Shown: one piece after another, positions 1 through 30,500 of the stretch
Position numbering within the stretch: position 1 is the stretch's first letter
Layout of the letters: each line of letters starts with the position of its first letter
Virus record (IMG/VR): IMGVR_UViG_3300040801_002079
Coordinates: 248,001-312,000 of that record
Length of the DNA: 64,000 nucleotides
Strand: one strand, 5' to 3'
Translations under genes and position numbers: made by a program
Notes under the pieces: model-generated
The model's database searches: none
Seen by the model: the letters and a program-made list of their open reading frames with translations, nothing else
Told to the model about the DNA's origin: nothing

Positions 1-1414
1 CTTCTGGTGTAAGCTGTAAGTATTTGGTCTGTGCGAATCTAACAGAAAGTGAATCAATTCCTTCAGCATTGCCATAGTTGTTGAGTCTGTCAGAATCAAT
101 AGCAATCTCTCTATGATCAGAGAAGTTAGATGGGCTTGGCAATGCTATTCTGAATGAAGATGGGTCAACTACTATCTTCATATCCGCCAAGAATCGTTTA
201 AATTCACCATCAAGGGTTTCTTCTAGATGGGCTTGTAGCCTCTCGACATATTGGGAGAACTTGATTTCCTGCATATATGCAATGCCTACCCTGCCATCAT
301 TGCTTGGACTGCCGCCACCGTCTACCATATTGTTCATATAGGAATCTGGTATTCTCATTCCTCTCCATAGCTTGGAGAAGAAATATTGTAAATCATCAAG
401 TTGTCCAAGGCCCTGACCACCGGGAAGGGTTTCTACACGACCACCATTGCCATCTGCTGGAACAGAGAAGAAAAAGTCTTCTTGCATTGACTGTGGATCG
501 TAAATTGATTCAATCTGATCTTTACCACCACGCTGAGTTGGAATTTTCTTCTGGCGCATTTCATTTTTAACTTTACGCAAATGCGCTTCAATCTGGGTTC
601 CCCTCATCTTACCGGTGGGGATATAGAATACACGGCGTTCAGGAGCACGGGAAATTCTATAGATTAGAAGTGAATCTTCAAGTAGTTCCTTCTGTTTAAA
701 GGTTCGATATGCTGCCCTTAAAATAGACTCCCCAAATGGAGCCTCATTATTCATTTCATCAGACAGCGTGAATCTAACAACATCTTTATTATCAACAAAC
801 CCATAATCTCTGTTGTTTTTACTATTGTCACTATGGGGAGTTATATTAACAGGAAGTAAAAGTTGGTTACCATAGTTTGCAGTGGCATCATTGAAATTAA
901 GATTTATTTCCCATTTCTTAATATCATATATATCTTCAACACTTACTTCTGCTGCATTAACATGCTTGGGATGAACGTATATTAACTTTTTAAAAGCTCC
1001 GGAATTATTTCTAAGAAAGAAGCAATCGCCGTACTTAATAGTAGACCTTGCCACGCCAAACAATCGGCTGTTCCACTGCTGAACTCTACACCATGTTTTT
1101 AATGCGGATTTCAGTGTAACGATTTGCGAAGTTGACATCTTATAATGTTCATTATCAACATGTACATCTAATGGTAAATCTCTTTTACTCTTATTGCCTA
1201 CCATTTCCTCAGCAATAAGGTCTAATGCACGAGCAATATCTATATCAGCATCCATAGTGTCATATTCACTATATCGCTTAAGTCTGGTGTACGAACCTCT
1301 AACCAAACGGGTGTACCAGTTAATGCTGCCAAATCCAAGCATATCAGCATTGGATGTCATGTTGGCAGAGGCATATCCCGGAGTTATAATTTTATAGAAT
1401 TTTTTAACGCTCAT
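1..1414 (-). CDS. gp20: Portal vertex protein (T4 gp20-like), 3' end runs off the left edge; absent from the ORF track
   Basis: Manual translation from ATG at 1414: MSVKKFYKII...RYSEYDTMDADIDIARALDLIAEE...LEDSLLIYRISRAPERRVFYI...QEDFFF...VETLPGGQGLGQLDDLQYF...RIPDSY; these are gp20 portal motifs. Confidence 0.93.
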   Translation of the reverse strand, partial: MSVKKFYKIITPGYASANMTSNADMLGFGSINWYTRLVRGSYTRLKRYSEYDTMDADIDIARALDLIAEEMVGNKSKRDLPLDVHVDNEHYKMSTSQIVTLKSALKTWCRVQQWNSRLFGVARSTIKYGDCFFLRNNSGAFKKLIYVHPKHVNAAEVSVEDIYDIKKWEINLNFNDATANYGNQLLLPVNITPHSDNSKNNRDYGFVDNKDVVRFTLSDEMNNEAPFGESILRAAYRTFKQKELLEDSLLIYRISRAPERRVFYIPTGKMRGTQIEAHLRKVKNEMRQKKIPTQRGGKDQIESIYDPQSMQEDFFFSVPADGNGGRVETLPGGQGLGQLDDLQYFFSKLWRGMRIPDSYMNNMVDGGGSPSNDGRVGIAYMQEIKFSQYVERLQAHLEETLDGEFKRFLADMKIVVDPSSFRIALPSPSNFSDHREIAIDSDRLNNYGNAEGIDSLSVRFAQTKYLQLTPE

Positions 1415-1471
1415 TTAAATTTTCCATTAATATTCTTATTTATTGATAGTGGGGCATACTGTAACCATATA

Positions 1472-4447
1472 TTACCATCTTCCTGACATTATAGCGGTAG
1501 ATCGTAGAGAGTCAACCTCTGTGTACGCTGCTTCGTGTGACCGTTTTGCTGCGTCTCGGGCCTGCGCCAATATATCGCTTGCGGAATTTCGTTTTTCATT
1601 TTCAACACGGTCTTCGGCAATTTTATCCTTATTCATCTTCTGGTTTTCACGCTGGATGTCATTATTTTCTTCGAGTAGCTCTTCCACTGATTTACCAGAT
1701 TTGCCTTTGGTTTCATTAATTCTATTAGCTTCTTCCATTGCTTCGGCTTGCGCCTTTAACGCCTTTCCTGCACCATCCAATCCAAGTCTCTTATTAATCT
1801 CCTCGGTACTCATACCTTTAACTAGATGTCCCTGACCAACCTTATCAAGCTGTGCTTGTAAGCGATTTCGTCTAGCCTCATTGACCATTCGGATATTTTC
1901 AGCATCAAGTTCGTCTTGTGATGCCCTATCATCTCCCCATGGCTTAATAAAATCTATTGTTTTTCCTAATATATCTCCCGCACCAATAAACCAATCTTCA
2001 TCTTTCCACTTTTCATACATTGCAGTACCGGCTTGGGTTCCCAATTCCCATACCTGATAAGCCATTGCCGCAGCGCCAGCAACTTTAAGTAGATTTCCGC
2101 TGAAGGTTTTAAAACTCCCCGCTACACCGGATGTTGCATTGCGAATTCCAGTATCAAGCCCTTTTACTCCTACCTGTGCACCCGCAATAGTTTTATTAAA
2201 TGGATTCAATGAAAATGTCGAGAAGCGCCCTGTTACCTTAGTGAATGCCTTAGACAAAATACCGGCCTTAGCTGCCGTCTGACCTAGCCCCCCAACAGTT
2301 AATGCTTTCATTAATAGTGCATTTTGCAACATAGATGATGCCAAAGTGAAACCTGCTACGCCTATACCTGAAAAGGTCTGAACAAGAGAACTCTTAGTCA
2401 ACCCCTGAACAAATTCATTAATTTCTTTATACGCGAATTCGGTGCCCATACCGTATCCACCAGTCTGCTCATACCCCTCACTTTCCTTACCGGTCAATAA
2501 TTCGTTTGCCCCCGATAAAGTATCCATGGCTTGCTGTAACTGAGCATTAACAGTTCCTGATGTGATTTGATTCATTATTTCTTCTTTTGATATGCCCGTC
2601 TTATCTGCCAGATTATTCAAAGCTGCATTGACTTGCTCTGATCGATTTACATCAAACATCTCACCTGTAAATCCACCAAATAGTTGTAAAATTTCTTGGG
2701 CCTGAGCCTTTTCAGCTATTAGTCGGTTTGCTTCGGCTTCGTCCCCACGATCTTGTGCATTTTGAATCATCTGAGTATAACGCTCTTGGAACAAAGCAGG
2801 GCCTGCCTCCATTAGAGGGGCTATCGTCTCATTAAAAGTTTTCTTTTGTTCGGCAGTTAAATTGCTAGGATCAAATGCATATTTCTTTAATATTTCTTTT
2901 TGATCATCTGATAATTCAATGCCAAGAACCCTCTCATATTGTTCGGCTAGTTGTCCCGCACCCATCATGCTCTTATATTTTTCAACTATGGGTGCCCACT
3001 TTTTAGCATTTTCCATGTTCAAACGCTGCTGCATATTTTCGTTAGAAAGCCCCAAAATTTTATTCATCTTTATGCGACTTTTCATTTCATTAACTAGGAC
3101 TTTTTGAGTACTACTACCAAGCAATCTAAGATTATTTGCGAAACCCACAAACGCAGGGTCTTTTGACATATCGTTAAAGATTTCACCAAATTCTTGAATG
3201 GGAACATTGAGTGCGTTTGCAGCCTCCTTATAAAATCTCACCATTTCTTTTGTGTTCAAATCCGCAGCCATTCCCGTGAATTTTGCAGATTCTTTTATTC
3301 TCATACCAAAAGAAAACGCTTCGCCTCCTATTAATCCGAAAGCCTTGCCCGCATCAGCTATTTGGAGCATAGCCTCTTCGTTTGCAGCATCATATAGACT
3401 TCCATCCATGCTCATGGCTTCTTGTCTTAAGGTATCTCTATATCGCAACAACCCCTGAGATATTTCGTCCTGCGACATACCCATTCTAACTCCAGCCTCA
3501 TGGAAAGATTCTGAAATATTGGCCTGATAGCGGAACAAAATATCATCCATCATATTTTTAGCGCCATAAACACTAACACCAGCCATTGATTTCATTAATG
3601 TGCCCATCTTCATGGAATGCTGCTCAATGGTTCTCTGAATATTGGTTGTAACCATCTGGGTTGCTTCTGACATTACCTCCGCTGATCCCTCCATGGCAGA
3701 GGCGAGTTTACCCAATGCTTGCTGTTCTTTTGCGTATTGAGCCTTATCATCATCCGATGATTTATCAGTTACAACCGTAGGCCCTTTTGTGCGCATTTGC
3801 TTTAGAGTTTTTTGGGTTTCATCATCCAACAATCCCATTACATCAACGGCTCCAGCCGTTGCTTCCTGTAAATTAGTTATTTTGTTAAACAATTCACCGT
3901 ATTCAGCCGATGTTGACTTTGTATTATTTGCCAATTCATGGAGTTTTACATTATATTCTTCTAATAAATTAGTAGTGTCAGATAATTTGCTAAGATCGGT
4001 TCCGGGTTTTTCAATATACCCGATCATATGTTGAACCATTTTTCGATGTTCTTCTAACTGTTCATCCGCAAACTGGCGTGTATCCCCAACTATTTCCTCA
4101 AACCTATCTTTTTGTTTCTGAGAAAATGCTGCAAGGGGGTGAAATGCGGTATTAATAACCGAAGAAACCGACTCTCCCGCCTTTTTAAAAATGTTACGAT
4201 TTGCTCTTTCAAAACTCTCACTCATTTCCTTGACAGATCGATTTAATGCGGCAGCGGCTGGTATTTTACCTCCACCTTTTTGTAAGAGAGAATCATCACT
4301 AACAAGTTTACTTCCCCTACTGGGTGTATCAGCATAGGATGGTCCACCGGATTCGGTAGATAATTTGGCAGCTATATGTTTAGCTGCGGCTTCAGCAAAG
4401 TCTTTTCCGAATTTTTGAAATAATTGTTTAATTTCAGCGTCTAACAT
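1472..4447 (-). CDS. Probable tail tape measure protein (991 aa)
   Basis: Long helical Ala/Gly/Gln-rich protein with hydrophobic segments in the C-terminal third; late promoter upstream; no enzyme motifs. Confidence 0.6.
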   Translation of the reverse strand: MLDAEIKQLFQKFGKDFAEAAAKHIAAKLSTESGGPSYADTPSRGSKLVSDDSLLQKGGGKIPAAAALNRSVKEMSESFERANRNIFKKAGESVSSVINTAFHPLAAFSQKQKDRFEEIVGDTRQFADEQLEEHRKMVQHMIGYIEKPGTDLSKLSDTTNLLEEYNVKLHELANNTKSTSAEYGELFNKITNLQEATAGAVDVMGLLDDETQKTLKQMRTKGPTVVTDKSSDDDKAQYAKEQQALGKLASAMEGSAEVMSEATQMVTTNIQRTIEQHSMKMGTLMKSMAGVSVYGAKNMMDDILFRYQANISESFHEAGVRMGMSQDEISQGLLRYRDTLRQEAMSMDGSLYDAANEEAMLQIADAGKAFGLIGGEAFSFGMRIKESAKFTGMAADLNTKEMVRFYKEAANALNVPIQEFGEIFNDMSKDPAFVGFANNLRLLGSSTQKVLVNEMKSRIKMNKILGLSNENMQQRLNMENAKKWAPIVEKYKSMMGAGQLAEQYERVLGIELSDDQKEILKKYAFDPSNLTAEQKKTFNETIAPLMEAGPALFQERYTQMIQNAQDRGDEAEANRLIAEKAQAQEILQLFGGFTGEMFDVNRSEQVNAALNNLADKTGISKEEIMNQITSGTVNAQLQQAMDTLSGANELLTGKESEGYEQTGGYGMGTEFAYKEINEFVQGLTKSSLVQTFSGIGVAGFTLASSMLQNALLMKALTVGGLGQTAAKAGILSKAFTKVTGRFSTFSLNPFNKTIAGAQVGVKGLDTGIRNATSGVAGSFKTFSGNLLKVAGAAAMAYQVWELGTQAGTAMYEKWKDEDWFIGAGDILGKTIDFIKPWGDDRASQDELDAENIRMVNEARRNRLQAQLDKVGQGHLVKGMSTEEINKRLGLDGAGKALKAQAEAMEEANRINETKGKSGKSVEELLEENNDIQRENQKMNKDKIAEDRVENEKRNSASDILAQARDAAKRSHEAAYTEVDSLRSTAIMSGRW

Positions 4448-4627: not shown

Positions 4628-5110
4628 ATGACTACAACTAAAAAGAAGAAAACTAAGAATTATTTGAATAATAAAGACATGCTGCATCAATGGAAACTAA
4701 GCTATGAAGCTGATGCAATGACAGATGTATTTGCCAACATGATCATGTTGCTTACCAAGAGATACTCATCCAAGGTTAGATTCAATGTTTGTGATACTTT
4801 CCGAGATGATATGGAATCATTTGCCCTGATGACCGTATCTAAAGTATGGAGAAGTTTTAATCCAGAGAAATCCAATAATCCATTCGCATATTTTACCCAA
4901 GTAATTAAGCGGGCATTTTATCAATATCAAAACATGGAACGCAGACAGCGTGATATTTCAAATGAACTATTAATAGAAGATGGTCAGTCCCCTTCCCATG
5001 CATACATGGTCGAATATGAATATCGGAATTTTGACCCGGACGATGCGGGTGGATCAATTAAAACCACGTATGGTGACGGATATTCTGAAGCTGATGAGAC
5101 CGAATCTTAA
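4628..5110 (+). CDS. gp55: Late-transcription sigma factor (T4 gp55-like)
   Basis: NYLNNKDML and FNPEKSNNPFAYFTQ motifs typical of gp55; matching NATAAATA promoters throughout the window. Confidence 0.9.
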   Translation: MTTTKKKKTKNYLNNKDMLHQWKLSYEADAMTDVFANMIMLLTKRYSSKVRFNVCDTFRDDMESFALMTVSKVWRSFNPEKSNNPFAYFTQVIKRAFYQYQNMERRQRDISNELLIEDGQSPSHAYMVEYEYRNFDPDDAGGSIKTTYGDGYSEADETES

Positions 5111-11380: not shown

Positions 11381-11758
11381 TCAGTAGTTAACTACTATAA
11401 CATTCAACCCATTATCTTTGGCATACTTAATCATGTGGGCAGTGCCACGAGATTTACCATCCCAGAATGCAATTAATGAATCGGCATAATCACCCATCTG
11501 CTCGTTGCGTATGGGTCCAGCGGCCTTTCCATGTTTATCCCATTCTGCTGGAAACAGCATTACACCAACATGATTTTCTTTAGCCCAGCGTTCACCTAAA
11601 CTATCGGCACCACGAGCACCACCTGATACAATCTCTATTTCATCAGCATGATTGCCATTCCATATAGCATTTCGAAAATTTTCTAATGTTTTTGATAGTT
11701 TCTCGTAGTCATTAAAGTCTCTGCCACCAGCAACTATTACTTTGTGAAAATTAAACAT
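11381..11758 (-). CDS. SLOG-family protein (DUF2493/YspA-like)
   Basis: VIVAGGRDF, SGGARGAD, AAGPIRNEQM, AFWDGKSRGT. Confidence 0.85.
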   Translation of the reverse strand: MFNFHKVIVAGGRDFNDYEKLSKTLENFRNAIWNGNHADEIEIVSGGARGADSLGERWAKENHVGVMLFPAEWDKHGKAAGPIRNEQMGDYADSLIAFWDGKSRGTAHMIKYAKDNGLNVIVVNY

Positions 11759-11767
11759 ATCCCTATT

Positions 11768-11998
11768 TTAATATATCGGGTTGGGTTTTTTCAACTCATT
11801 TTTTATATGTTCTGTTTGGAACTCGTTAACCAAGTCCTTTTCAAAGGGGGTCATTTCCATTAATTCAGCATATGGTATGGAACCCCTACCGAAGTAAGCC
11901 ATAGAGATGCAAGATTGAACGATTGCTCTAATCTCACCCCTCAACCTAGCAATTTCCTTATTAATTATTGTTTTGTCTTCTTGGTTGAGGGCACGGTA
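11768..11998 (-). CDS. gp51-like frame (76 codons), probably reached by -1 frameshift from the gp26-like gene
   Basis: Open -1 frame YRALNQEDKTIINKEIARLRGEIRAIVQSCISMAYFGRGSIPYAELMEMTPFEKDLVNEFQTEHIKNELKKPNPIY*; ELMEMTPFE resembles the gp51 motif; begins at a T7 run. Confidence 0.7.
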   Translation of the reverse strand, partial: YRALNQEDKTIINKEIARLRGEIRAIVQSCISMAYFGRGSIPYAELMEMTPFEKDLVNEFQTEHIKNELKKPNPIY

Positions 11999-12924
11999 AA
12001 AAAATGAATCGGATTTAACGGAATCTCCGTTTTACTCTCATATGAACACTTTTTACACTTAAACTCATATTCCTTGGATGTTCCCCAATCATTAGCAACT
12101 TGGATATATTCTTGCATCTCGTCAATGACTGGAGCCTCACATGCTAGCGCCCATTCACGAATATGCTCTTTATTTGTAACTCCATTAACCGATTTGATGA
12201 CAGACAACAGTGTGTCAATAATGAAATCAGCCATTTCCTCAGGAGTTTCAATTTTTGTCATATCGTACTGGAACAATGTTAACATTTCTTTAAATGTTGA
12301 AGGACGTAGCTCAATCTCTTCACCAGTGGCTACAGTAAATTTGTAGTCATCCAGATTTGGATCAAACGGCACAGTATCACGTAAGAACTTATTAAGGTTT
12401 ATTTGATAAGTTGGTTTAACATTTACAAGTTCTGTGTATGAAGATTCCTCACCTTCTCTTCTCTGATCAATGCGATGCTCATCGGTTGACGATTCTGGAA
12501 TTATTTCTTTATCATTTCCACACTTGGGGCAATTCCAGTAAATGTCCAACTCTGATCCGTAAGTTACCATTCTTAAGCAGACTAATAGGTAATCTACATC
12601 ATTGGATAACAAATCCATCGGTTTTTTAATTTGAGGCATACACCGCTGAAATACCTTTTCAATAGCTGAACCTTGAAATAGCATATCAGGTGAACGCATT
12701 GTAATCTCATCAACTGTTGTCATGGGATAAACTAATACTTCACCATTAACAACCTCCTCATCCAGTTCACCATTAGTATACGTAACACCTCCAGATGGAA
12801 GTCTAAATGTCTCCGGGGGCATCTTGTTGAAACGTGCCATTAATGGATTGGGTGGAGGAGCGTATGTTCTGGTAGCCTCTTCTGTTTCAGGCTTAACTTC
12901 GTTTACATGTTCGTTCATCATCAA
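11965..12924 (-). CDS. gp26: Baseplate hub assembly protein / tail chaperone (T4 gp26-like)
   Basis: LPSGG, PMTTVDE, DVDYLLVCLRMVTYG, two CxxC pairs, C-terminal FF. Confidence 0.8.
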   Translation of the reverse strand: MMMNEHVNEVKPETEEATRTYAPPPNPLMARFNKMPPETFRLPSGGVTYTNGELDEEVVNGEVLVYPMTTVDEITMRSPDMLFQGSAIEKVFQRCMPQIKKPMDLLSNDVDYLLVCLRMVTYGSELDIYWNCPKCGNDKEIIPESSTDEHRIDQRREGEESSYTELVNVKPTYQINLNKFLRDTVPFDPNLDDYKFTVATGEEIELRPSTFKEMLTLFQYDMTKIETPEEMADFIIDTLLSVIKSVNGVTNKEHIREWALACEAPVIDEMQEYIQVANDWGTSKEYEFKCKKCSYESKTEIPLNPIHFFTVPSTKKTKQ

Positions 12925-12949: not shown

Positions 12950-13003
12950 TATTTATAAGTACAAAAAAATGGTGATTTTACCGTTAAGATATAATCATAA
13001 ATA
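12950..13003. promoter_or_regulatory. Back-to-back late promoters at the main strand switch
   Basis: Minus TATAAATA 12950-12957 (gp26-like) and plus CATAAATA 12996-13003 (baseplate cluster). Confidence 0.75.
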
Positions 13004-13045: not shown

Positions 13046-13696
13046 ATGGGTATAATACGGGACGCTGCTTTTAATAGAGATGGTGGAATTATAGCGAATC
13101 AGCAACGATTTGTTCAGCAGCAACAAAGAGAGGACCATAGCTTGGGTGGTTCTCAAGAAGAAATTAGATTAATAGCCCGAGATGGTCAGGAAGGTCAACA
13201 CGGGGTAAGATTATTCGTCACACCCGAATTAAATGAAACACGTACTGTAAATTATCAAGAAATATCGGAAATGCGACAAGCCGGTGGAATATTGATCTAT
13301 ATTGGTACTCAGGCTAGGACTTATCAAATAACAGCCCGGATGGTCTCAAGATCACAAAGAGAGGCAGACTTAACATACAAATATACACACCTATTAAAAT
13401 CATGGACTGTCCCAAGAAAGGGCGGCGGAGTGTTTGACGATGAAAACGCACCCGAAGTTTTAAAACTATATGGTTATGGACAGGAGCGTCAAATAAGAGG
13501 GGTTCCTGTTGTTATAACATCGCTGAGCATTGATTTCCCGTCTGCTGTAACCTACGTAACAACTAGGGATGGAAAGGCCCATGTCCCCGTTATACAAACA
13601 TTCACAATATCATTGAAAGAAGCCAGAAGACCGGAAGAGTTACAGGATAATTTTGACCTCACTGCGTACAAACAGGGCACATTGAAAAATTGGTAA
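13046..13696 (+). CDS. Baseplate/tube initiator protein (gp48-like)
   Basis: First gene of the baseplate cluster; APEVLKLYGYG...GVPVVITSLSIDFP...ISLKE pattern of tube-fold initiators. Confidence 0.55.
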   Translation: MGIIRDAAFNRDGGIIANQQRFVQQQQREDHSLGGSQEEIRLIARDGQEGQHGVRLFVTPELNETRTVNYQEISEMRQAGGILIYIGTQARTYQITARMVSRSQREADLTYKYTHLLKSWTVPRKGGGVFDDENAPEVLKLYGYGQERQIRGVPVVITSLSIDFPSAVTYVTTRDGKAHVPVIQTFTISLKEARRPEELQDNFDLTAYKQGTLKNW

Positions 13697-14068: not shown

Positions 14069-15904
14069 ATGTCAGAACCTAAAAACCCATTAGATCAATT
14101 TAGTACATATCAGGTACGCCACATCTTAGGAGCATATAAAAATACTCCTTCAGCGGAAAGTTATAATCTTGTAATAACTTCCGGTAAAAGTGGAACATCC
14201 ATAGCAGGGGGTGACGGTGTTGTTGTAGCTAATGAGTTTGTTGATAGCGTGTTTAGTGTGCCATCTGTAGTATGGAGATGGGGAAAGGTTGGAGAATATA
14301 GCGCAACCACCACTCATATGGATGGAGTTATAGAAATAGGTGATGCTACGGGAGGTAGGTTCCTTGACTGGTTTCGCACAAATGTTATAAAAACATTAGG
14401 CAAATCTACTGACCACTTAACGTTTGCTTTAAAAACTTATTTTATTGGGGTCAATCGAATAAATGAAACAAAGGATGTAATAACAGGTAATCCATTAATA
14501 TTCCATGTGCATCATATAAGGGATATCATGAATGTGAAAGGGGAGGGGACCCGAGTAAGACTTGATTTTAGTGCTGCATATAATGCAACAGGACAGAACC
14601 CAGCAGTCTGCAAGCCCTATCAGTTAACACTAACACACAAAAGCGGAAACCTAACCAATACTGACCCCGAAGAACCTAACGGTAGCTGCTCTATATCAGA
14701 CCGAGGATCGGAGGATGCTTCGTTTTTCGACCCCAGAAAAGAAAGACTTGATAAAAGTAAACCAATGAGGACACTAAAAGAGTTATTTGAAGCATTTGAA
14801 GCCGACCTTAATCAACAACCAGAAGCCCACAAAATGCAGGTTCAGAAATGGTTAAGTAAAATAAGAGATAATTATGTTCAAAAGATAACGCCACCCGAAC
14901 AAGAACGAGGTGAGAAATTACCCATTGAGTTCGAAGTGAAACTTGACCCCATATATTATGGATATAAGGTTGATAATAGAAACTTACCATTTGAGCAAAC
15001 AGAAGAACGCCCCGATGAAACCAAGGGGGTGACATCTGTACCATTTAGGCCCGGAGCACCACTAACAGAAATGATTGAAACTCTCATGAAGTATTCAATC
15101 AAAGTGGGTGAAGACGCAGCCTTGCCACAAAATGCAAAAACGTTCGCATCCAATATTAGCTATGTTGTAGATCGGGATGATAAAATCAAGATCAAGATCA
15201 AGATCAAACAAATAACAATACCCTACACCACTCAAGACTTTGGAGATACTGGACCAGACAAGGCATTAAAGCCATTAACATTTTCATTCAAATCTAGGAC
15301 CGGTGTCGATAATGATATAACATTTCTTAAAACTACAATATCAACTGATGCGGGAATTATACCCCTTGAAACCCCACAAACCGACAGTGCCAAAAAACCA
15401 TTAGTTATTTTTGGTAATAGAGAAACACAGACAGGGGAACGAATACCAACAAGCGCTCCGGGAGATAAATTCTTTGATTCAGGATTTAGTGGACTGCGTT
15501 TACCTATAATGCCATATTTAAATACTGGGTTGGAAAATGCAGAAGCGGCAAGTAACGTTGATATTATGAACTTTATAAAGCTAAACCAAAGAAGTGACCA
15601 TCAAATAGAAATAAGAGGAAATTCAAGCTTAATGTTTGATTTCCACCGATTACCCAGTGAAGCAGCGGAACTTGAAAATCCCGGAGAGGCCGAGTATTAT
15701 CAAATTCCAGAATCATATCCAATGTATCTGAAGATTGATATATTCTTAAGGGGAGATGCTGTTATTGGACTGGATAGAGACAGGGGCGTTCCTGAGCAAT
15801 ACTTTTATAAAAATCATTATGAAATTTCAGGAGTTATTAATAACTTAACAGACGGGGCATTTTATCAAACTATATTACTCAAGAAAACGGACGATATTAT
15901 ATAA
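14069..15904 (+). CDS. Probable baseplate hub protein (gp27-like)
   Basis: Between gp53-like and spike genes; N-terminal NPLDQFSTY, C-terminal IEIRGN and YEISGVINNLTDGAFYQTI. Confidence 0.55.
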   Translation: MSEPKNPLDQFSTYQVRHILGAYKNTPSAESYNLVITSGKSGTSIAGGDGVVVANEFVDSVFSVPSVVWRWGKVGEYSATTTHMDGVIEIGDATGGRFLDWFRTNVIKTLGKSTDHLTFALKTYFIGVNRINETKDVITGNPLIFHVHHIRDIMNVKGEGTRVRLDFSAAYNATGQNPAVCKPYQLTLTHKSGNLTNTDPEEPNGSCSISDRGSEDASFFDPRKERLDKSKPMRTLKELFEAFEADLNQQPEAHKMQVQKWLSKIRDNYVQKITPPEQERGEKLPIEFEVKLDPIYYGYKVDNRNLPFEQTEERPDETKGVTSVPFRPGAPLTEMIETLMKYSIKVGEDAALPQNAKTFASNISYVVDRDDKIKIKIKIKQITIPYTTQDFGDTGPDKALKPLTFSFKSRTGVDNDITFLKTTISTDAGIIPLETPQTDSAKKPLVIFGNRETQTGERIPTSAPGDKFFDSGFSGLRLPIMPYLNTGLENAEAASNVDIMNFIKLNQRSDHQIEIRGNSSLMFDFHRLPSEAAELENPGEAEYYQIPESYPMYLKIDIFLRGDAVIGLDRDRGVPEQYFYKNHYEISGVINNLTDGAFYQTILLKKTDDII

Positions 15905-21585: not shown

Positions 21586-24500
21586 GTGAATAATTCGGAT
21601 TATAAAAAAAATAGGATAAACATTAATGAATTGCTACCGGACCTTATTTCAAATACTGAAATAAGTAAAAGTATTCAAGAAAATCTGTTTAATCGATTCC
21701 TATCTAAAGATGAATACCAGAGAGTTATAGGTGTTATAGGAACTCCCGACCCAAGAGACCCAACTTCATTTAGAATTCCAGAAAACAATGAATACCGAGA
21801 AAATTATCAGTTGCAGCCCGTTGCTCATGCAAAGGTTGGCTCAGTAGATTACCATTTGTCGTTTCATGATTTGATGAGACGATTGGAGTATTTGGGAGTA
21901 AATACTGAAAGATTTGATGAGTGGGGCAATTCGATGCAATTCAATTGGGTCCCACCAATTGACATTGATAAAATTATAAACTATCAAGATTATTTTTGGG
22001 TATCGGAAAATTTTGATGACGTACCACAATATATAACGGTTAAAAACTTGTGCACTTGGGCGCAAGCTCGTTCTATACAAGCAAAGAAGACTGTTATTTC
22101 TGTACAACAGCCCATTGACATCAACTCAATAAATGAAAATATAATCGAATTATCAGGAAATGTTGTTTCCAAGTATAGTCCGGGAGAACACTTAATAGTT
22201 TACAATAGTAATGAGAGTGAATATGTCGTTGTTACAATTAAAACCGTAGATTTTAATCTATCATCATCTAATACTGATATTATTGTTGACACTAGATTAT
22301 CATCTGATCTCAATACCGCAGCAAGAATCGAATTTCCCATAATTGGAGTTATATCCGCAGAAAAATCAATAATTTTAGAGGGGGATTTGACAAATATTTT
22401 CGCTCCGGAATATATATTCTCTTTAACTAAGTCTATTGGGACGGTAACAACATACCATACGGTTTCAAGCGCATCATATGATACACTGCAAAATCAAACA
22501 ACAGTTGTACTGAAAGAAAACCTTGAAGCCTTAAACTGGAAATATGCTTCAACCTTGCCTCAAATCTTAATGAATGATGAGGAGGCTAGAAGCAGATGTA
22601 ATGAAAATTATACTAGCACCTTGTTTACACAATGGAAAGACGAATACATTGGAAGGCTAATATGGTCACCTAATAAATTAATTATTCAATCTTCTGGATC
22701 GGGACGAACAGAGCTAGGGGAAGATTCTTTTTATGAAGAGAGTTTACTACTTGTAACGTCCGGGGTTAAGAGAGGGGATGTATTAAATATATTAGAAGGT
22801 AAAAGTGAAGGCCAGCATGAAATCATAAGCGTTAATCAAAATCCGGTAACGGGGAGCGTATTGGGGGTTGATCCAAGCGCATTCTTCTTTACAGAATATA
22901 ATGTATCATATCAGATTTATAGGGAACAAACCACGGCTCTAATAACACGATCCGAAGATGATGTACCATCATCTCCAGAAATATATGACCTATGGATAAA
23001 TTCAGATGATGGTAATTTATATCAGTGGACTGGAAGCACATGGAGATTGGTTGCAAACAACATTGATGTACTTGTCGCTTCTTTATATGGCAGACACCTA
23101 CTTGACTTCAATGAAGATGATGCGTGGGCCAAAGAAAATAAATGGATTCACAAAACACAGCTTAGTACATTTGAATCTGCCACACGAGCGCAAATTCCAA
23201 TAATTGAATACGAACCATATATTAAAAAATCAACAACGTCATATTCTAGCAAGGAATGGAAATATAGGGTTGATTCAACTAACGAATACTTTGAAACTGA
23301 TGCGTCACCCAGAATGTTTGAAATTCAGGACATTCGCATAACAGAGAGTGGTAATGAATTTTCATTCATGACGGATACAAAAATATTACTTCATGAAAAA
23401 TTTGGCAACTTGGTTGACGATATTCAAATTGGTGAAAGGATAGAATTTAATGACTTTTCAGAAAACATCAGCACAAAAATTGTTAAAGATGTTGAATTTT
23501 ATAGAGTGTTTCCGAAGTCCAGACACCAAACGGTAATAACATTAACAACCCCCGTAAATGATCCATTTGATCTACCTGTAGGGGCACACATTGGTCCACA
23601 GGAAACATCACTGGGTGATCCTTGGATTGGTATAGATGAAGGGCACTGGCTATTTGAAGGAGTTGTTAATATTCAGGCATCAAGTATTGAGCCTGAGCCA
23701 AACCCAATGCTTAACGAACTATTTGAAAGTAAGTATGTTCCGAAACAAACCGGCGCACGAACGCTTGATATACAATCATTAGATTTTGAAGACATTGAAT
23801 CATTAGAAGTTATAGAAGCACTGGAAACTATAGTACAGGGTGCATACAACTATGAAACAAATATTGGACCTGTATGGCAAACATTTTCTCTCCCGGATAG
23901 TATACAAATAACCGCTCCAAGGTTCGTATTTGACCCCACACTTCATACATTAGCACTATATGAAGATTATCAAGAGGGTGACATGCGTGTATACATAAAT
24001 GGTGTCAGACAGTATGGCAACTTCTTTGATATTAGATCAGAAATATATCCAGATTTTGTTGGTGGCATTCAGTTTGATGATGATACGGTTATTACTAACC
24101 TAGATGTTATACGAATTGAACTGGGCGAATATGCTAAGTATGAAATAGGAAAAAGGGCGGTCACTATTCCAACTGAAGCGGGACTAGAGCCATACAATTT
24201 AGTAGATGTTCGGGCAATGGAGCAAATAAAAACTGATACAAATCAGTACATTTATTTTAACGTTTACGATGTTGACACTCAGCCGAAAATATTTGCTAAT
24301 ACTATATTCAAGTATAATGAATCCGATGAATATTCCGTAAGCCCATATATTCTGGAGCGTGTTGTTGCCGATCCAGCCACCAAAACCTATGAATTTGTTA
24401 ACGAATTGTTCAACCATGAAACAGAAGAACTATATTGTTATTATGACGCAAAGTATGTTGGTAACGAACTTCAAAATCTATGGAAGAGAGGATTAAATAA

Positions 24501-27500
24501 CGAACAGTACGTACCTAAAAAAATAGATAACACTGATTACTGGAAGCTTCCAAATCAGATGTACTATAACCCACAGCATAGAAATAGAAGAGTTGTATCT
24601 TTTCAGGATGTATATAGACATTTTAGAAGTATAGCCCAGTCCCAAACCACTCCCGGAATATATTCAAATGTAACAAACCTATTTCATCTTGATGATAGGG
24701 TCAATTTCGGCTTGGGTGGAACAATAAAAGAACATAATGATAATTTTGATATCTTGATATCAACCATCTTTTTAAACAATGTAAATCCTATAAAACTCTA
24801 TCAGTTTGCGCATGATCAATATCGTTTAAACTTTAAATGGTTGGAAGAAAAATTTATCGATAGTTTTGAAATGCTAGTAAGTGATACTCAGTCCAACACG
24901 ACTGATACACTATCCGCCACTATTTCAGAATATTTAATAGATGCATTTGAAACGAATGATAAACTATCTCAATGGTTTGGGGATAGCTCCACATATAATG
25001 AAGCAACTGATACTGGAATAAAAAACTGGATTGCAACAACTCCATATTTTGGAATGAATTATCTGTACATGCCGTACATGAATATTGATGAAAGATATGG
25101 AATTTATGAATTGTTCCATCATGATGGTCACCGTAGACAAATAGAGTTATCAGCTTCACTGAAGGAGCAATTAAATAAACGTCTATTGGCTCTAGATATA
25201 GCGTCAGAACAAGTAGTTAATAATGATCTTGATCCATTTCCCTTCAGCATAGAGGGTCGTGCTGTAAAACGCGGAGATTATCTGGTTAGGACTGTCCTAC
25301 AGGATAAAACTCGTAAAGTATACAGAAGAAACTACAATAACGTATGGGAAGAATTTCCATATGAAAAGATATTAGCAGAAACATATCTGGATGTCGAGAA
25401 AAGGCTTTATGATAACTGCCCATCATATGATGAGCTTGTTTTCGATTTTTCAACGGTTGAGAATGACGTTGAATATTCTTCCACGCTTGAAAAGCAATTC
25501 GTTAAATACGGCAATTCCAGAGGTATAGATTATCTATACGCCAACGAAATATTTTACACTGGGACTGACCCATTCACTTGGAATTATTATTATACCCCAA
25601 TACCGTCACATCCCGTGACAGGAATAGAAAGTTCAGATGTTGCGGGTAGCTGGCAAGCATTATATGAGAAAGTTTATAATACCCCATACCCACACCTTGA
25701 ACCATGGAAATTGCAAGGATATAGGGATTTGCCGGATTGGTGGCTAAATCGTTATAAGGTAACAGATGGTACCAGAAGATGGTCATCCGAAATGTGGGAT
25801 AATGTTCTAGCTGGAAGAGTTCCCACTGGACGAACCCTTCCTGACGGTGAAATATCGGCTGGCGCAAGAAATGAAGTAAATTCTTATGATTACGTATCTG
25901 TAAATATCGACAATTTTCCAACACATGATGGATACGATTCGGATGAATTGCTTCCACCATATTGGAATTCCAGCAATTCCGAACTAAGTACAGTTAGGTC
26001 ATTATATGATCCAGATGCTAATGATTTCATACAATCACCCGATCTGGACTTTGATTGGGGACAAAATGGAACACAAGAATGGAAATGGAGTGCATCCGCT
26101 CAAAGAATTTATGATGAGTTAATAACAGCATTTAAATTGCAGCCATTAAAATTCACAGCAAGAACATACGGAATAGAAAAGGCTGAGATAAATTGCCTTC
26201 AAATTGATTCCTTAACAAAGTCTCCATACGCCGTTAGAAAAACTCTATTTCATGGAGATATAGACCCAGACACTAATAGTGTGATTACAATTAATGGTGC
26301 TGGGCAATGGTATTCACACTACAACAGAAGCCATAATTTTGATGGCGAATCATCAGAATATAGAACACTATGGAAAGATTGGGATATCCCCCTATCATAT
26401 GAATTTAATGCATTCATTGATACGCCCAGCTTCAGAATAGAAAATGCAAATTTCGACATAACAACCAAAGATTATAGCGTGGAAGTTAAAAAGACTCACG
26501 GTATAGATTTAAAATCAATCTTTGGGCTAAGGGCAAGAATATTATCAGTTCCTTCTAAGTATGCAAAGAACCGCGATTATGGTTTAGGGTGGACCGCAGA
26601 GTTCTTTAACACATCCCCTGATAATAATGATATAAATGTTTATGGAACAGAAAACTATGACTATAGGGTAAAATCGGATAATGAGACCCTGCGCTTATTT
26701 AGTTACCCAATATCTGGAGCAGATGTATCCAGACAAAGAGGTCTACAAGTAGCGAATTATAATCAACAAGCACTATTAAGCGACGAGACACTATATCCAT
26801 CAACCGTAACTCCATTTTTTGCTGACATTTTAATTGATGGAATAAAGCAAATTGAATTGGTTGTGCGTGGCACAGAAGTTAAAACTATATCGGATTTGCT
26901 GGATTCTCTTAATTTACAGCTTGGAACCAACGCTACTGCCACACTTGAACAGGGTAACATTTATATAAGAAGTGATACTACCGGGGCAAGTTCTTCCATT
27001 GAAATAACAGATAGAGGATTGTTTACAACATCACATCAATCATATAGTTCTTTACAGCCGCCAACAACAGAGCCTTTAGAATTTAATCGTGTATTTACAA
27101 TTAAAGGAAACTACACATCGGTATTTCCTGAAAAGAGCGAAGTTGTAATAACAGATTCTACTAATTATAACGGAACATATACCGTGTTTGGAACATTTTA
27201 TGATGTGCCAAATAATGAAACACATATTCACGTAGATGAATTTGTAACAATACCAGATACCACAGTTGATGGATTTATAGAACCTGCCGATGCACTAACT
27301 TTACCGGAAGAGTGGGTGACTGGAACAGAATTATTCTTAAATGGAAACTCCGATGCGCCTCCACCATTAGATAATACACTACCGTATTACATCATTCGAT
27401 TAAGCGATAGAGAATTTAAATTGGCTGAAACTGAAGTTCTAGCATATAAGGGGACAGCAATATCCGGAATCTCCGACAGTTTTATAAACACCATGATAGG

Positions 27501-30500
27501 CAGGCTACAGCGCACATTCCGAGCATTGAGCGGTCAAACGATTGATACGGTATGGCGGAGACACTATCCAGATAAACGAGTTGTCGAGTCTCACCCCAAT
27601 CTAGTCAGTATATCCGGCATACAAAACATGATTGATTTTGTAACGGGATATGAAGATTACTTATATGATCGCGGATTTGTATGTAAAAATCCAGATGGGG
27701 ATAATTATGACCTATCTACTGGAAGAACTAATGATTGGCAGTTTGAATTAGAGAAATTTATATCTAACCTTTATAGGCTAAGAAGTAGAAGACAAGAAGA
27801 GCCATTGGAATATAAAGTATCAGTTAATAGTGTGGACAATAACATAACACTATTGGATGGTGCATACTCAAGTTGGCAGAATGGTACGCGGGTTGTAATT
27901 GTGGAAGGAGATGATGAGGCCCAATTACCCCAACCATTTGATTCAACACTATCGAACGCATTCCCCTATTACATTATACGAAGCGCTCATGATAATATTT
28001 TCCAGTTAGCCTATACCCATTATGATGCAATGAGGGGCAATGCCATTGATATCATAGATGATGGAGTGGGGGATATAAGGCTTAAAGTCTTTAAGAGATT
28101 GACAAATGCTCCAGAATTAGAAATAAACCCACTAAAATCATCAATATGGGTTAAAAATGATCAGGGTGTTATGAATGATGTATTTCATGGCACAAACCTT
28201 GATGTTGTCACATCACAAGCTGTATTTGATAACAATAAAAGGGAAATGAACAGCAATGAAATAATTGTATTCAGACAGGATCATGAAAATAAAATAACAA
28301 TAACAAATGAATTACGCAATTATACAATAGATGCTAAGGTTCCCATCAACAAATATATGGCGGGAATGAATTTATATTATGATGGATATGAGCATATCAT
28401 AACATTTGAAGAATATTCAACCGACGACTCTTTGATATACGATCCATTCTTGGGCGTATCAACACTTAACTTCAGAATCGAATTTAACCGACAGAATGAT
28501 ACTACCTTTAGGCCAAATGTTGGTGGATACACATTACTTGATAATGAATTATTGCAAAATCTAGAGTCCTCTGTAAATGACGTTAGAATGATGTACGACA
28601 CACATAAGACACTGGAAACTAAGCAGTTAACAGAATATGTTCGCAAATCATTAGGATTCGATGAAAAGGATTATATGAATGACATTTCATTAAATCCTAA
28701 AACACAGTTCCTATTTTATAAAGGAATGATTCAGAATAAGGGTACAAATTTTGCCGTAGATGCATTCACAAATCAAACGCTATTTGAAACTGCCGAAATC
28801 GATGAATTCTGGGCGTATAAGCTTGGAGAATTTGGTGGAGCAAGAGAGCTTAGTTATCCTGAAATGATACTAACCCCCGATGATGTTGTTCGCAGAGAAC
28901 TAAGATTGGAGTTCTTATTGCCGGATGAAGGAAGTCTACATTCGTCATTTGTTCCGGTTAGAATAACTGATCCGGAAAGATGGTGGGACCAGCCAGATCA
29001 ACTACAAACAATAAAACCATATGACGGATTCTGGTTCAATATTGATGTTCTTGAGCAAATCGGAAATTCGGAATACAACATAGAATACATTAATGGTAAT
29101 TACATCTTAGATTTGGGTAAGATTGTTAACTCTGTAATTTTGACACATTACAATCCCGAAAGTGAACTCGTTGAACAACTGCAAGAGAATTTACATTTCG
29201 TCTATATGAGTAATAGGGCGATAAAGTTCATAAGAGATGCGGATGATGTTCCCGTTGCAGATTTGCCCCCAGACTCTGCGTTAAAATATCAAGACCTAAC
29301 TGTTAATGTGGTAACATATCACTATGATGCCATAAACCCAGCTAAAGTTATTGACAGAGACTATGACCTTGGTAATTATGATGATACGGGAATTGATGCT
29401 AAGGCCGCAAAAGTTATAACGGAAGTGCCGGTTTGGAATCCAGCCTTTGGACAATATTCACATATTGTAGATTTTGTTACTAATATAAAGAGTAGCGAAG
29501 ACCAAGCAAACTATACCAATTATCCAGACGGCACTTCCCCCGATTTAACACCATGGCTATTTGACATGGTTGGTACCGTATGGATGGACAATAGTATAGA
29601 GCATTATGTTCCATATTATGACAAAACTGCCATGCCTAATTTCGATAAAAGAATCTTCTTATGGGGCACATTGGCTGAATGGGGCGATATAGCACTATAT
29701 GAGTGGTCACAATCACTACTTCCACCAGAAGAATGGGACGGAGACGGTTCCCCTAGAACACTAATCTATAAAAATGATGCAGCAGACCCTGTAAATGATG
29801 ATCCCATTTGGGTTGAAAATCCAGACCCCGATGTGCATGAAGATTATATTGCAGGCTTGGTTACTCCAACCAATAGCACATCCTTAACTGGTGAAATAGA
29901 GGCATATATAAATGGTGAATATGATCAAACCCTAACTATAAACACCCCGGATGATTTTGTAACATATGCTCTAACTTTGCCGCAAGAGGTTCATGTTCAT
30001 TTGATGCATCGGGGGTATGTCCCAACAGAGGATGATCTAAGTGATAATCTATATAAGTATGATACGCCATACTGCAAAGAGACTAGGTATAATTCGGATA
30101 GTAATGAACCATATGATGTATATTATTTCTGGGTAAGAAACCGTGAAACAAAGAGAGAATTTCAGAATGGCAGCGTAACAGTAGTTGAAGCGGAAAAGAT
30201 ATCTAAGAATATGGATTCGCCGTATATGATTATTGAGGGATTGCGTAGCAATGAATTTGGTTATGGAATAATTTACGGCGCAACATTTGATCCATTTGAA
30301 TATGATGTTCCAAATAGATATACTCACGCAATAATAAAAGGACTAAGAGGAACTGTTAAGGGACATTCTCGCTATACGTTAAGGTTCACACGAGACTTTA
30401 ACTTGAGAGATGAGATAGATGATGATCTAAATCTAAAAAATGTCCACGAGGAATGGAAGTTATTTAGAGAAAAGCAGTTTTCCAAGATTGATATCGATTT

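Follow-up and report, generated by a model that had tools for sequence, protein, structure and literature searches.

Evidence for a conserved -1 frameshift by which one gene of a jumbo T4-like phage appears to encode both gp26-like and gp51-like baseplate-hub assembly proteins

Introduction

In the tail assembly chaperone genes of phages lambda (G/GT), P2 (E/E+E') and Mu, a -1 slip near the 3' end of a tail-assembly gene gives a short and a long protein that share the N-terminus and both act in assembly (Xu, Hendrix and Duda 2004). The T4-like superfamily has been the notable exception to the rule that long-tailed phages make a short and a long assembly chaperone in this manner. In T4, gp26 and gp51 are listed as hub assembly chaperones, and gp51 is required for assembly but is not present in the particle (PMC3004832). 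These proteins, which are encoded by divergent paralogous genes rather than by neighbors in one direction, both belong to Pfam family PF12322, gp51 having an extra C-terminal tail of about 48 aa (phrog_634 / PF28602). In cyanophages and KVP40, gp51 has been described as a truncated stand-alone gene of about 20% of the gp51 length (Sullivan et al. 2010, PMC3037559; KVP40 annotation note).

The locus described here was analyzed in a window of 64,000 nucleotides (positions 248,001 to 312,000 of IMG/VR record IMGVR_UViG_3300040801_002079) from a 317-kb jumbo myovirus that has T4-like core genes but is not a close relative of T4. A sequence-only reading of the window had proposed that a gp26-like and a gp51-like frame are joined by a -1 frameshift on a run of seven T's, that the products are the equivalents of lambda G and GT, and that transcriptional slippage was also possible. 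The sequence details of that reading were confirmed and its interpretation was supported by comparative evidence, with the qualifications noted below.

Results

Organization of the locus

The features identified, all of which are on the minus strand, were as follows.

11965..12924 (-): gp26-like ORF, the zero-frame short product of 319 aa, with the listed start TTG at 12924, alternative ATG starts at 12921 and 12918 and stop TAA at 11965-11967
11998..12004 (-): slippery heptamer T_TTT_TTT, read in the zero frame as CAT TTT TTT, in which both the P-site and A-site codons are Phe
11992..11997 (-): six-nucleotide spacer (ACCGUG) between the heptamer and the downstream helix
11938..11991 (-): candidate stimulatory stem-loop with 5' arm CCCUCAACC (11991-11983), a 36-nt loop that contains the zero-frame stop and 3' arm GGUUGAGGG (11946-11938)
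11768..11998 (-): -1 frame extension of 76 codons (11998-11771) plus TAA (11770-11768), the gp51-like C-terminal tail of the predicted 385-aa long product
11786..11869 (-): stretch inside the extension that matches phrog_634, "baseplate hub assembly catalyst" (the short gp51 of cyanophages)
12950..12957 (-): TATAAATA, a match to the T4-type late-promoter motif 26 nt upstream of the ORF start

Ten sense codons follow the second TTT before the zero-frame stop. In the -1 frame, the next codon is TAC (11998-11996) and the frame remains open to 11768, giving a predicted long product of 309 + 76 = 385 aa, for which the predicted tryptic peptide across the junction is TEIPLNPIHFFYR. The first ATG in the extension is at codon 33, corresponding to the 44-aa version noted in the sequence-only reading, and a TTG-started ORF of 58 aa (11768..11944) is also present. 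The late-promoter motif is a lead only, since 11 matches were noted in the window against 10 expected; a gp55-like late sigma factor is encoded at 4628-5110.

The possibility that the apparent frameshift reflects a homopolymer sequencing error, or a pseudogene derived from a single 385-aa gene, was raised by the low depth of this metagenome assembly (about 4x). However, the T7 length was reproduced without indels in three run-level assemblies of the source sample and the same one-base offset was present in 88 independent genomes, including carefully sequenced isolates, which makes this explanation highly improbable.

Conservation of the slippery heptamer and the -1 frame

A search for related loci with the single protein gave none, whereas a search with an alignment identified 80 in IMG/VR. 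An in-phase X_XXY_YYZ heptamer and an open -1 frame were present in the window and nine named jumbo phages, in 80 of 80 IMG/VR loci and in S-PM2, P-SSM2, Syn9 and KVP40. All 88 non-identical relatives examined carried the heptamer, as T_TTT_TTY in 83 and A_AAT_TTT in 5, together with a -1 extension of 57-96 aa, although the body proteins were only 23-40% identical. The codon before the two Phe codons ended in T in 83 of 83 loci (8 different codons and 7 amino acids; expected share 0.53) and the first Phe codon was TTT in 83 of 83 (TTT share elsewhere in the same ORFs, 0.66). The FF motif is itself conserved as protein, including in T4 gp26, and part of the T run is therefore explained by coding. 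Nevertheless, the run was never disrupted synonymously in relatives that keep the overlapping frame.

Transcriptional slippage, in which RNA polymerase adds one U in the T run, would yield the same protein, so that comparative data on the products do not discriminate, and T6-T9 runs are present. However, most runs are only T6 and five loci have T5 within A_AAT_TTT, which are probably shorter than the runs of about 8-9 or more usually needed for efficient slippage of bacterial RNA polymerase. Moreover, the conserved features, namely the codon phase of the heptamer, a candidate stimulatory helix 4-9 nt downstream and, in cyanophages, an SD-like element about 9 nt upstream, are ribosomal signals. 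Transcriptional slippage is thus unlikely to be the main route.

Downstream helices

The MFE fold contained a 9-bp helix that begins 6 nt after the heptamer (z = -2.1 to -3.2), and the same 6-nt spacer was seen in Xoo-sp13 and XacN1. Across 76 loci, helices starting 4-9 nt after the heptamer had a mean score of 18.4 compared with 12.2 at control anchors in the same ORFs, and 59% exceeded the control 95th percentile, while the arm sequences differed widely. In the clade that includes the window, 75% of cells paired, a value reached by 0 of 500 shuffles, although the register slipped by 1 nt in some members. No single consensus structure was found for all clades, as the 3' arm occurs at different distances and registers, and classical covariation support was accordingly modest. 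SD-like GGAGGG or AAGAGG was noted about 9 nt upstream of the heptamer in cyanophages and KVP40 but no SD-like element was present upstream in the window.

Relationship of the two products to gp26 and gp51

The short product matched PF12322 (T4_baseplate; E 9e-13; 48.8 bits against a curated cut-off of 24.5) and phrog_150 "baseplate hub" (E 1.4e-14), covering profile positions 12-233 of 282, the same span covered by T4 gp26. It was the only PF12322 match in the 316,801-bp genome. The predicted long product aligned with gp51 over 216 columns (P 2e-8), through the junction to the C-terminus, whereas the short product alone gave P 3e-5 over 86 columns.

Evidence from the extension alone required profiles. 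The extension had no Pfam or PHROG hit at E <= 0.1, tblastn identified only two Stenotrophomonas phages, and an HMM of the extension was weak against single gp51 sequences (at most 13 bits) and was then rebuilt from window and IMG/VR rows only. The profile-profile match to the C-terminus of T4-type gp51 was moderate (P 1.3e-5, probability 81%). The match to phrog_634 (E 0.045), although weak on its own, was the only one in the whole genome and lies exactly where predicted. In an alignment of 74 extensions, conservation started right after the slip site. A search of the protein library with the profile gave 808 hits, and about 20 cluster representatives of 319-351 aa carried the extension in frame. 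These natural single-frame proteins aligned without a gap to the predicted trans-frame products across the junction. No PDB sequence relative was found, and an AF2 model of a gp51 (pLDDT 91) had no PDB match at E <= 0.001.

In a complex prediction, the extension docked on the body with a score of 0.61 against a best control of 0.30, a mark reached by 58 of 80 solved complexes and 2 of 110 mismatched pairs. The runs shared at least 70% of contacts and the partner pLDDT was at least 77. The predicted contacts joined the conserved body motif at residues 67-82 with the conserved extension motif at residues 46-54.

Independent translation of the downstream frame

The docking prediction is equally compatible with a non-covalent partner, that is, a free gp51-like peptide of about 58-75 aa translated from an internal start or by termination-reinitiation coupling. 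The downstream frame is annotated in this way in Xoo-sp13, XacN1, RAS14, Serratia BF, E. coli A4, Syn9 and KVP40. An ATG lies in the -1 frame about 20 codons into the extension in Xoo-sp13 and XacN1, 2-3 codons after the heptamer in P-SSM2 and S-PM2, and within an overlapping TAATG in KVP40, and a separately initiated small protein cannot be excluded in these phages. In the window, the TTG at 11944, with a weak AAGGA 10 nt upstream, could start the 58-aa protein.

In contrast, the PA5oct extension contains no ATG, GTG or TTG, the first start in RsoM2USA is at extension codon 48, and Syn9 "gp51" is annotated as a 47-aa stub starting from an internal ATG. Only 9 of 83 loci had an ATG in the first 5 codons and 42 of 83 had none in the first 30. 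Independent initiation of the whole extension is thus impossible in many relatives. In addition, conserved residues begin immediately after the heptamer, upstream of any start, and the candidate starts lie inside the predicted helix. Independent translation also does not explain the invariant synonymous T's or the occurrence of an in-frame long paralogue in lineages without an open overlapping frame, and is considered unlikely.

One gene with a slip site or two genes

The window genome, the three cyanophages and KVP40 each have one PF12322 gene. In contrast, contigs that encode in-frame long forms have a second, short PF12322 gene just upstream, and T4 has genes 26 and 51. The T run was disrupted, or the -1 frame closed at once, exactly where two separate genes exist. 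Thus, T4 gp26 ends 3 codons after its FF motif, which is coded TTC TTT and provides no slippery run. In a tree, T4 gp26 and T4-type gp51 were sisters (98/93) inside a clade with the frameshift-type KVP40 and cyanophage genes, while the other two-gene lineage was in the jumbo clade, indicating that the two-gene state arose at least twice.

Discussion

These findings, although obtained without protein or RNA evidence (no RNA-seq run was found to hold this phage), are best explained, with a high degree of confidence, by a conserved programmed -1 ribosomal frameshift. On this interpretation, in which slipping on the ribosome, its efficiency, the role of the helix and the biochemical function of the two forms are inferred, most ribosomes stop at 11965, giving the 319-aa counterpart of T4 gp26, while a fraction slip back one base when the two tRNA-Phe occupy UUU UUU within U_UUU_UUU, probably helped by the helix that begins 6 nt downstream, and read 76 further codons to give the 385-aa protein, the extra helical tail of which corresponds to that of T4 gp51. 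One gene would therefore supply both hub-assembly chaperones in a ratio set by the slip frequency. The long form is likely the minor one, which fits the reported requirement for gp51 in assembly without its presence in the virion (PMC3004832). No published report of this frameshift was found, although subscription journals were not covered.

The frameshift offers a simple explanation for the presence in T4 of two paralogous hub chaperones of unknown mechanism, and for the apparent stub of gp51 in cyanophages and KVP40. It also corrects the annotation of a core gene in hundreds of phage genomes, in many of which the extension is unannotated, truncated or called a hypothetical protein, and the occurrence of frameshift and duplicated genes provides a natural experiment for asking why a fixed ratio of the two forms matters. 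More tentatively, gp26/gp51 may be the functional counterpart of G/GT in T4-type phages, an unrelated family that arrived at the same short/long design, with the two forms acting on the hub and tape-measure complex in a fixed ratio. In this view, which is possible but not established, the frameshift is the ancestral state of the whole T4-like superfamily (cyanophages, schizo-T4 phages, Rak2/PA5oct-type jumbo phages) and was replaced at least twice, independently, by gene duplication into a short and an in-frame long gene, once on the line leading to T4.

The sequence-only reading of the gene as a G/GT analogue is correct as a description of the expression logic, at the sequence level only, and of the inferred chaperone role, but the proteins are not homologous to G/GT in sequence or fold. 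No TAC family was found among the Pfam or PHROG hits, and the body is a zinc-ribbon-containing PF12322 protein of about 300 aa, much larger than gpG. Nor does the gene of the window lie between a tube gene and a tape-measure gene, its neighbors being a SLOG-domain gene and a RuvC-like gene downstream and a divergent baseplate operon upstream. In KVP40, a tube-like gene precedes the gene and an unassigned 656-aa ORF follows it. No gp29 (tape measure) homologue was detected in this genome, the cyanophages or KVP40, and the ORFs after the short gp51 of KVP40 and Syn9 gave only a weak TMP hint (E 0.003), so that tube-chaperone-TMP synteny remains a lead.

The E. coli dnaX frameshift appears to combine a heptamer with a downstream hairpin, which in the present phage is only a candidate, and, as in the cyanophage and KVP40 versions, an SD-like element about 9-10 nt upstream. 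However, the shifted frame of dnaX seems to stop almost at once, giving a shorter protein, whereas here the shift adds a 76-aa domain.

The arrangement in cyanophages and KVP40 is the same as that in the window. Thus, their short gp51 (phrog_634, E 1e-22 to 1e-32) overlaps the 3' end of the only PF12322 gene in the -1 frame, with T_TTT_TTC one codon before the stop, although no frameshift was proposed in the papers that could be searched and the extension in the window is only distantly similar. Compared with the T4 proteins, to which identity is low and detectable only with profiles, the short product ends, like gp26, just after the FF motif, and the long product matches gp51 over its full length, including the tail. 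The gene also lies next to, and divergent from, a baseplate operon, as does gene 26 of T4. Where T4 uses two divergently transcribed paralogous genes, however, the present phage has one gene and a predicted frameshift.

Organization of the gp26-like locus

Given the sequence of the window, the elements of the putative frameshift locus were located on the minus strand, as follows.

11965-12924, minus strand: ORF of 319 aa, the predicted short product
11998-12004, minus strand: run of seven T's, read in the zero frame as CAT TTT TTT ACC
11965-11967, minus strand: TAA ending the zero frame, ten sense codons after the run
11768-11770, minus strand: TAA ending the -1 frame
11944, minus strand: TTG that would start a 58-aa version of the extension
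12950-12957, minus strand: TATAAATA, the T4 late-promoter consensus, 26 nt upstream of the gp26-like start

The ORF matched Pfam PF12322 'T4_baseplate' above the curated cut-off as well as phrog_150 'baseplate hub', which is the family of T4 gp26. Read one base back from the last T of the run, the -1 frame was open for 76 codons, and the two predicted products are 319 aa and 309+76 = 385 aa. The first ATG of the extension was found at its codon 33, giving a version of 44 aa. In agreement with these results, the statements of the sequence-only reading, which had described the T7 run ten codons before the gp26-like stop, the 76-codon -1 frame, the 44-aa ATG-started version and predicted products of 319 and about 385 aa, were all correct. 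The T7 run appeared without indels in three separate assemblies of the source sample, a microbial mat. The number of late-promoter motifs in the window was equal to the chance expectation.

The window lies in a complete virus record of 316,801 bp with terminal repeats, and the neighbors are T4-like core genes. These include, on the plus strand, a divergent operon with gp53-like, gp5-like, gp25-like and gp6-like baseplate genes, together with gp46/47-like nuclease subunits, a helicase and a gp55-like late sigma factor. Other ORFs noted in the same region were the following.

13046-13696, plus strand: first gene of the divergent baseplate operon (216 aa), matching only the C-terminal part of a 'virion structural protein' family (phrog_12050)
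14069-15904, plus strand: ORF of 611 aa without a family hit
21586-31800, plus strand: single ORF of 3404 aa directly after the gp6-like baseplate wedge gene
11381-11758, minus strand: 125-aa SLOG/YAcAr-domain protein (PF10686, E 4.5e-19; phrog_289) immediately downstream of the extension

The first two of these occupy roughly the positions that genes 51, 27 and 28 hold in T4. DNA of the SLOG/YAcAr-domain gene was 68-76% identical to genes in unrelated podoviruses and siphoviruses of Salmonella, Vibrio and Cellulophaga, which suggests a mobile gene. The nearest isolates, as judged from the gp26-like protein, were jumbo myoviruses, including Xoo-sp13, XacN1, RsoM2USA, RAS14, Atu_ph07, PA5oct, CBB and the Rak2 and 121Q groups, at 23-38% identity.

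Conservation of the heptamer and the -1 frame

In nine named jumbo phages, the gp26-like ORF ended with FF plus 1-11 codons and carried T_TTT_TTY with the first T at a third codon position, while the -1 frame was open for 71-82 codons. An alignment query of IMG/VR returned 591 relatives, and each of the best 80, which were analyzed further, contained an in-phase X_XXY_YYZ heptamer and a -1 frame of 76-96 codons. Five of these had only A_AAT_TTT; in these loci the zero frame reads N-F-S but the predicted shifted product restores N-F-F. Over 83 non-identical loci with the T heptamer, the preceding codon ended in T every time (8 different codons, 7 amino acids; expected share 0.53) and the first Phe codon was always TTT (share 0.66 elsewhere in the same genes). 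Sequencing error as the source of the apparent frameshift is excluded by the number of independent genomes. Transcriptional slippage, which would give the same protein, is disfavored by the short runs, mostly T6 with T5 in five loci, and by the conservation of phase and flanking signals.

Independent initiation of the extension was not generally possible. The PA5oct extension contained no ATG, GTG or TTG at all, and the first start codon in RsoM2USA was at extension codon 48. Only 9 of 83 loci had an ATG within the first five codons and 42 of 83 had none in the first thirty, whereas conserved residues started directly after the slip site. Where an ATG was present (Xoo-sp13, XacN1, P-SSM2 and KVP40), it was located inside the predicted helix. 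Separate initiation may add a free small protein in some phages but cannot explain the family-wide pattern. In public records the extension is mis-annotated or missing. 'gp51' of Syn9 (NC_008296; positions 1749-1892 of the extracted locus) is a 47-aa stub from an internal ATG, while RsoM2USA (2274-2522) and PA5oct (2358-2579) have no feature at all over the conserved -1 frame.

Relationship of the predicted products to T4 gp26 and gp51

In T4, gene 26 is followed by gene 25 and gene 51 is transcribed divergently, and the two are therefore not neighbors in one direction. Both T4 proteins hit PF12322 (E 9e-64 and 4e-52), and gp51 has about 48 extra C-terminal residues. On phrog_150, gp26 covered profile positions 14-235, gp51 covered 13-280 and the short ORF of the window covered 12-233. 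T4 gp26 ends three codons after its own FF, which is coded TTC TTT, so that it has no slippery run.

The extension was linked to the gp51 tail by several comparisons. An alignment of predicted long products matched a gp51 family alignment over 216 columns, straight through the junction to the gp51 C-terminus (P 2e-8), whereas the short products alone matched over 86 columns (P 3e-5). The extension alone matched the last 37 columns of gp51 (P 1.3e-5, probability 81%), and the only match to phrog_634 ('hub assembly catalyst') in the whole genome, at 11786-11869, was located inside the extension (E 0.045). An AlphaFold model of a T4-type gp51 was confident (pLDDT 91) and showed the tail as helices 196-249. 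In a complex prediction, the extension of the window was placed on the gp26-like body with a score of 0.61 against a best control of 0.30, a mark that was reached by 58 of 80 solved complexes and 2 of 110 mismatched pairs; the runs shared at least 70% of contacts and the partner pLDDT was at least 77. The predicted contacts joined the most conserved body motif (residues 67-82) to the most conserved extension motif (residues 46-54), which supports one folding unit but cannot tell a fusion from a bound partner.

Single-frame long forms and two-gene genomes

A profile of the extension found 808 proteins in 1.84 billion, most of which were stand-alone ORF calls of 58-98 aa. About twenty representatives, however, were 319-351 aa and carried the extension in frame at the C-terminus. 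These aligned without a gap to the predicted trans-frame products (LDPxxFF/RxRLL against LDxxxxF/RxKLI, with the slash at the junction), which pins the shift to the heptamer. Two contigs encoding such long forms each had a second, short PF12322 gene immediately upstream. These short genes, which ended in SFFND and NFLSST, kept a relic in-phase T_TTT_TTC or T_TTT_TTA near their stop (positions 1650-1710 of L107 and 2740-2790 of L108, the loci of the two-gene lineage), but the -1 frame closed after one or two codons, an arrangement that looks like the fossil of a former slip site. In contrast, the genome studied here, the three cyanophages and KVP40 each hold a single PF12322 gene. Thus, a genome has either one gene with an open overlapping frame or a short gene plus an in-frame long gene.

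In a maximum-likelihood tree, T4 gp26 and T4-type gp51 were sisters (support 98/93) within a clade that also held frameshift-type KVP40 and cyanophage genes, while the other two-gene lineage was located inside the jumbo clade. The two-gene state therefore arose at least twice, although the direction of change, with the frameshift first, is a parsimony inference from an unrooted tree.

Short gp51 of cyanophages and KVP40

Sullivan et al. 2010 noted that gp51 of cyanophages and KVP40 is about 20% of the normal length and lacks the first ~200 residues (PMC3037559), and the KVP40 record says the same. In S-PM2, P-SSM2, Syn9 and KVP40, this short gp51 (phrog_634, E 1e-22 to 1e-32) overlapped the 3' end of the single PF12322 gene in the -1 frame, with T_TTT_TTC one codon before the stop. 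Three of the four had a hairpin starting 4-10 nt downstream (z about -3.3), and all four had an SD-like element about 9 nt upstream. In P-SSM2, S-PM2 and KVP40 this element, GGAGGG or AAGAGG, is coded by the conserved L-E/R-G residues and is positioned as in E. coli dnaX; the window and the jumbo clade lack it. The 'truncated gp51' is most simply the frameshift tail of the gp26-like gene.

Predicted RNA structure

In the window, a predicted helix of 9 bp started 6 nt after the heptamer and was formed by two arms.

11991-11983, minus strand: 5' arm, CCCUCAACC
11946-11938, minus strand: 3' arm, GGUUGAGGG

Xoo-sp13 and XacN1 had an 11-bp helix at the same place. Over 76 loci, the best helix with a 5' arm starting 4-9 nt after the heptamer scored a mean of 18.4, compared with 12.2 for 1,630 control anchors in the same ORFs; 59% exceeded the control 95th percentile, and the arm sequences were very different from one another. 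The 3' arm was found at different distances in different clades and its register slipped by one base within the clade of the window. Covariation on a single structure was therefore modest, with 75% of cells paired, a level reached by 0 of 500 shuffles, and 4 pairs showing double changes. The helix is regarded as probable rather than proven.

Proposed mechanism and comparison with known systems

The best reading of these findings is tandem -1 slippage of two tRNA-Phe on U_UUU_UUY, and recoding that yields a gp51-like long product is considered highly likely, although slipping on the ribosome is inferred. T4 gp26 and gp51 are listed as hub assembly chaperones, and gp51 is reported as needed for assembly but absent from the particle (PMC3004832), which would fit a low-abundance long form.

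The sequence-only reading had inferred that gp26 and gp51 are the G/GT equivalent in this phage. The locus appears to work like lambda G/GT and P2 E/E+E' but is not a member of that family. No TAC family hits and no PDB sequence or fold relative were found, and no tube or tape-measure flank was present in this window. No gp29 homologue could be found in this genome, in the cyanophages or in KVP40. In KVP40, a tube-like gene precedes the gp26-like gene and an unassigned 656-aa ORF (143-2113, minus strand, of the extracted locus) follows the short gp51, while in Syn9 the ORF that follows (gp14) is 1111 aa with weak phrog_167 tape-measure and endolysin-family hits. These large ORFs may be the unrecognized tape measure, which would give a tube-chaperone-TMP gene order as in lambda, but this synteny is a lead only. 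No description of a frameshift in gp26/gp51 was found in full-text literature searches, which did not cover subscription journals, and what appears to be new is the setting rather than the principle. The arrangement is the familiar frameshift design, in an unrelated chaperone family, in the one large group of long-tailed phages thought to lack it.
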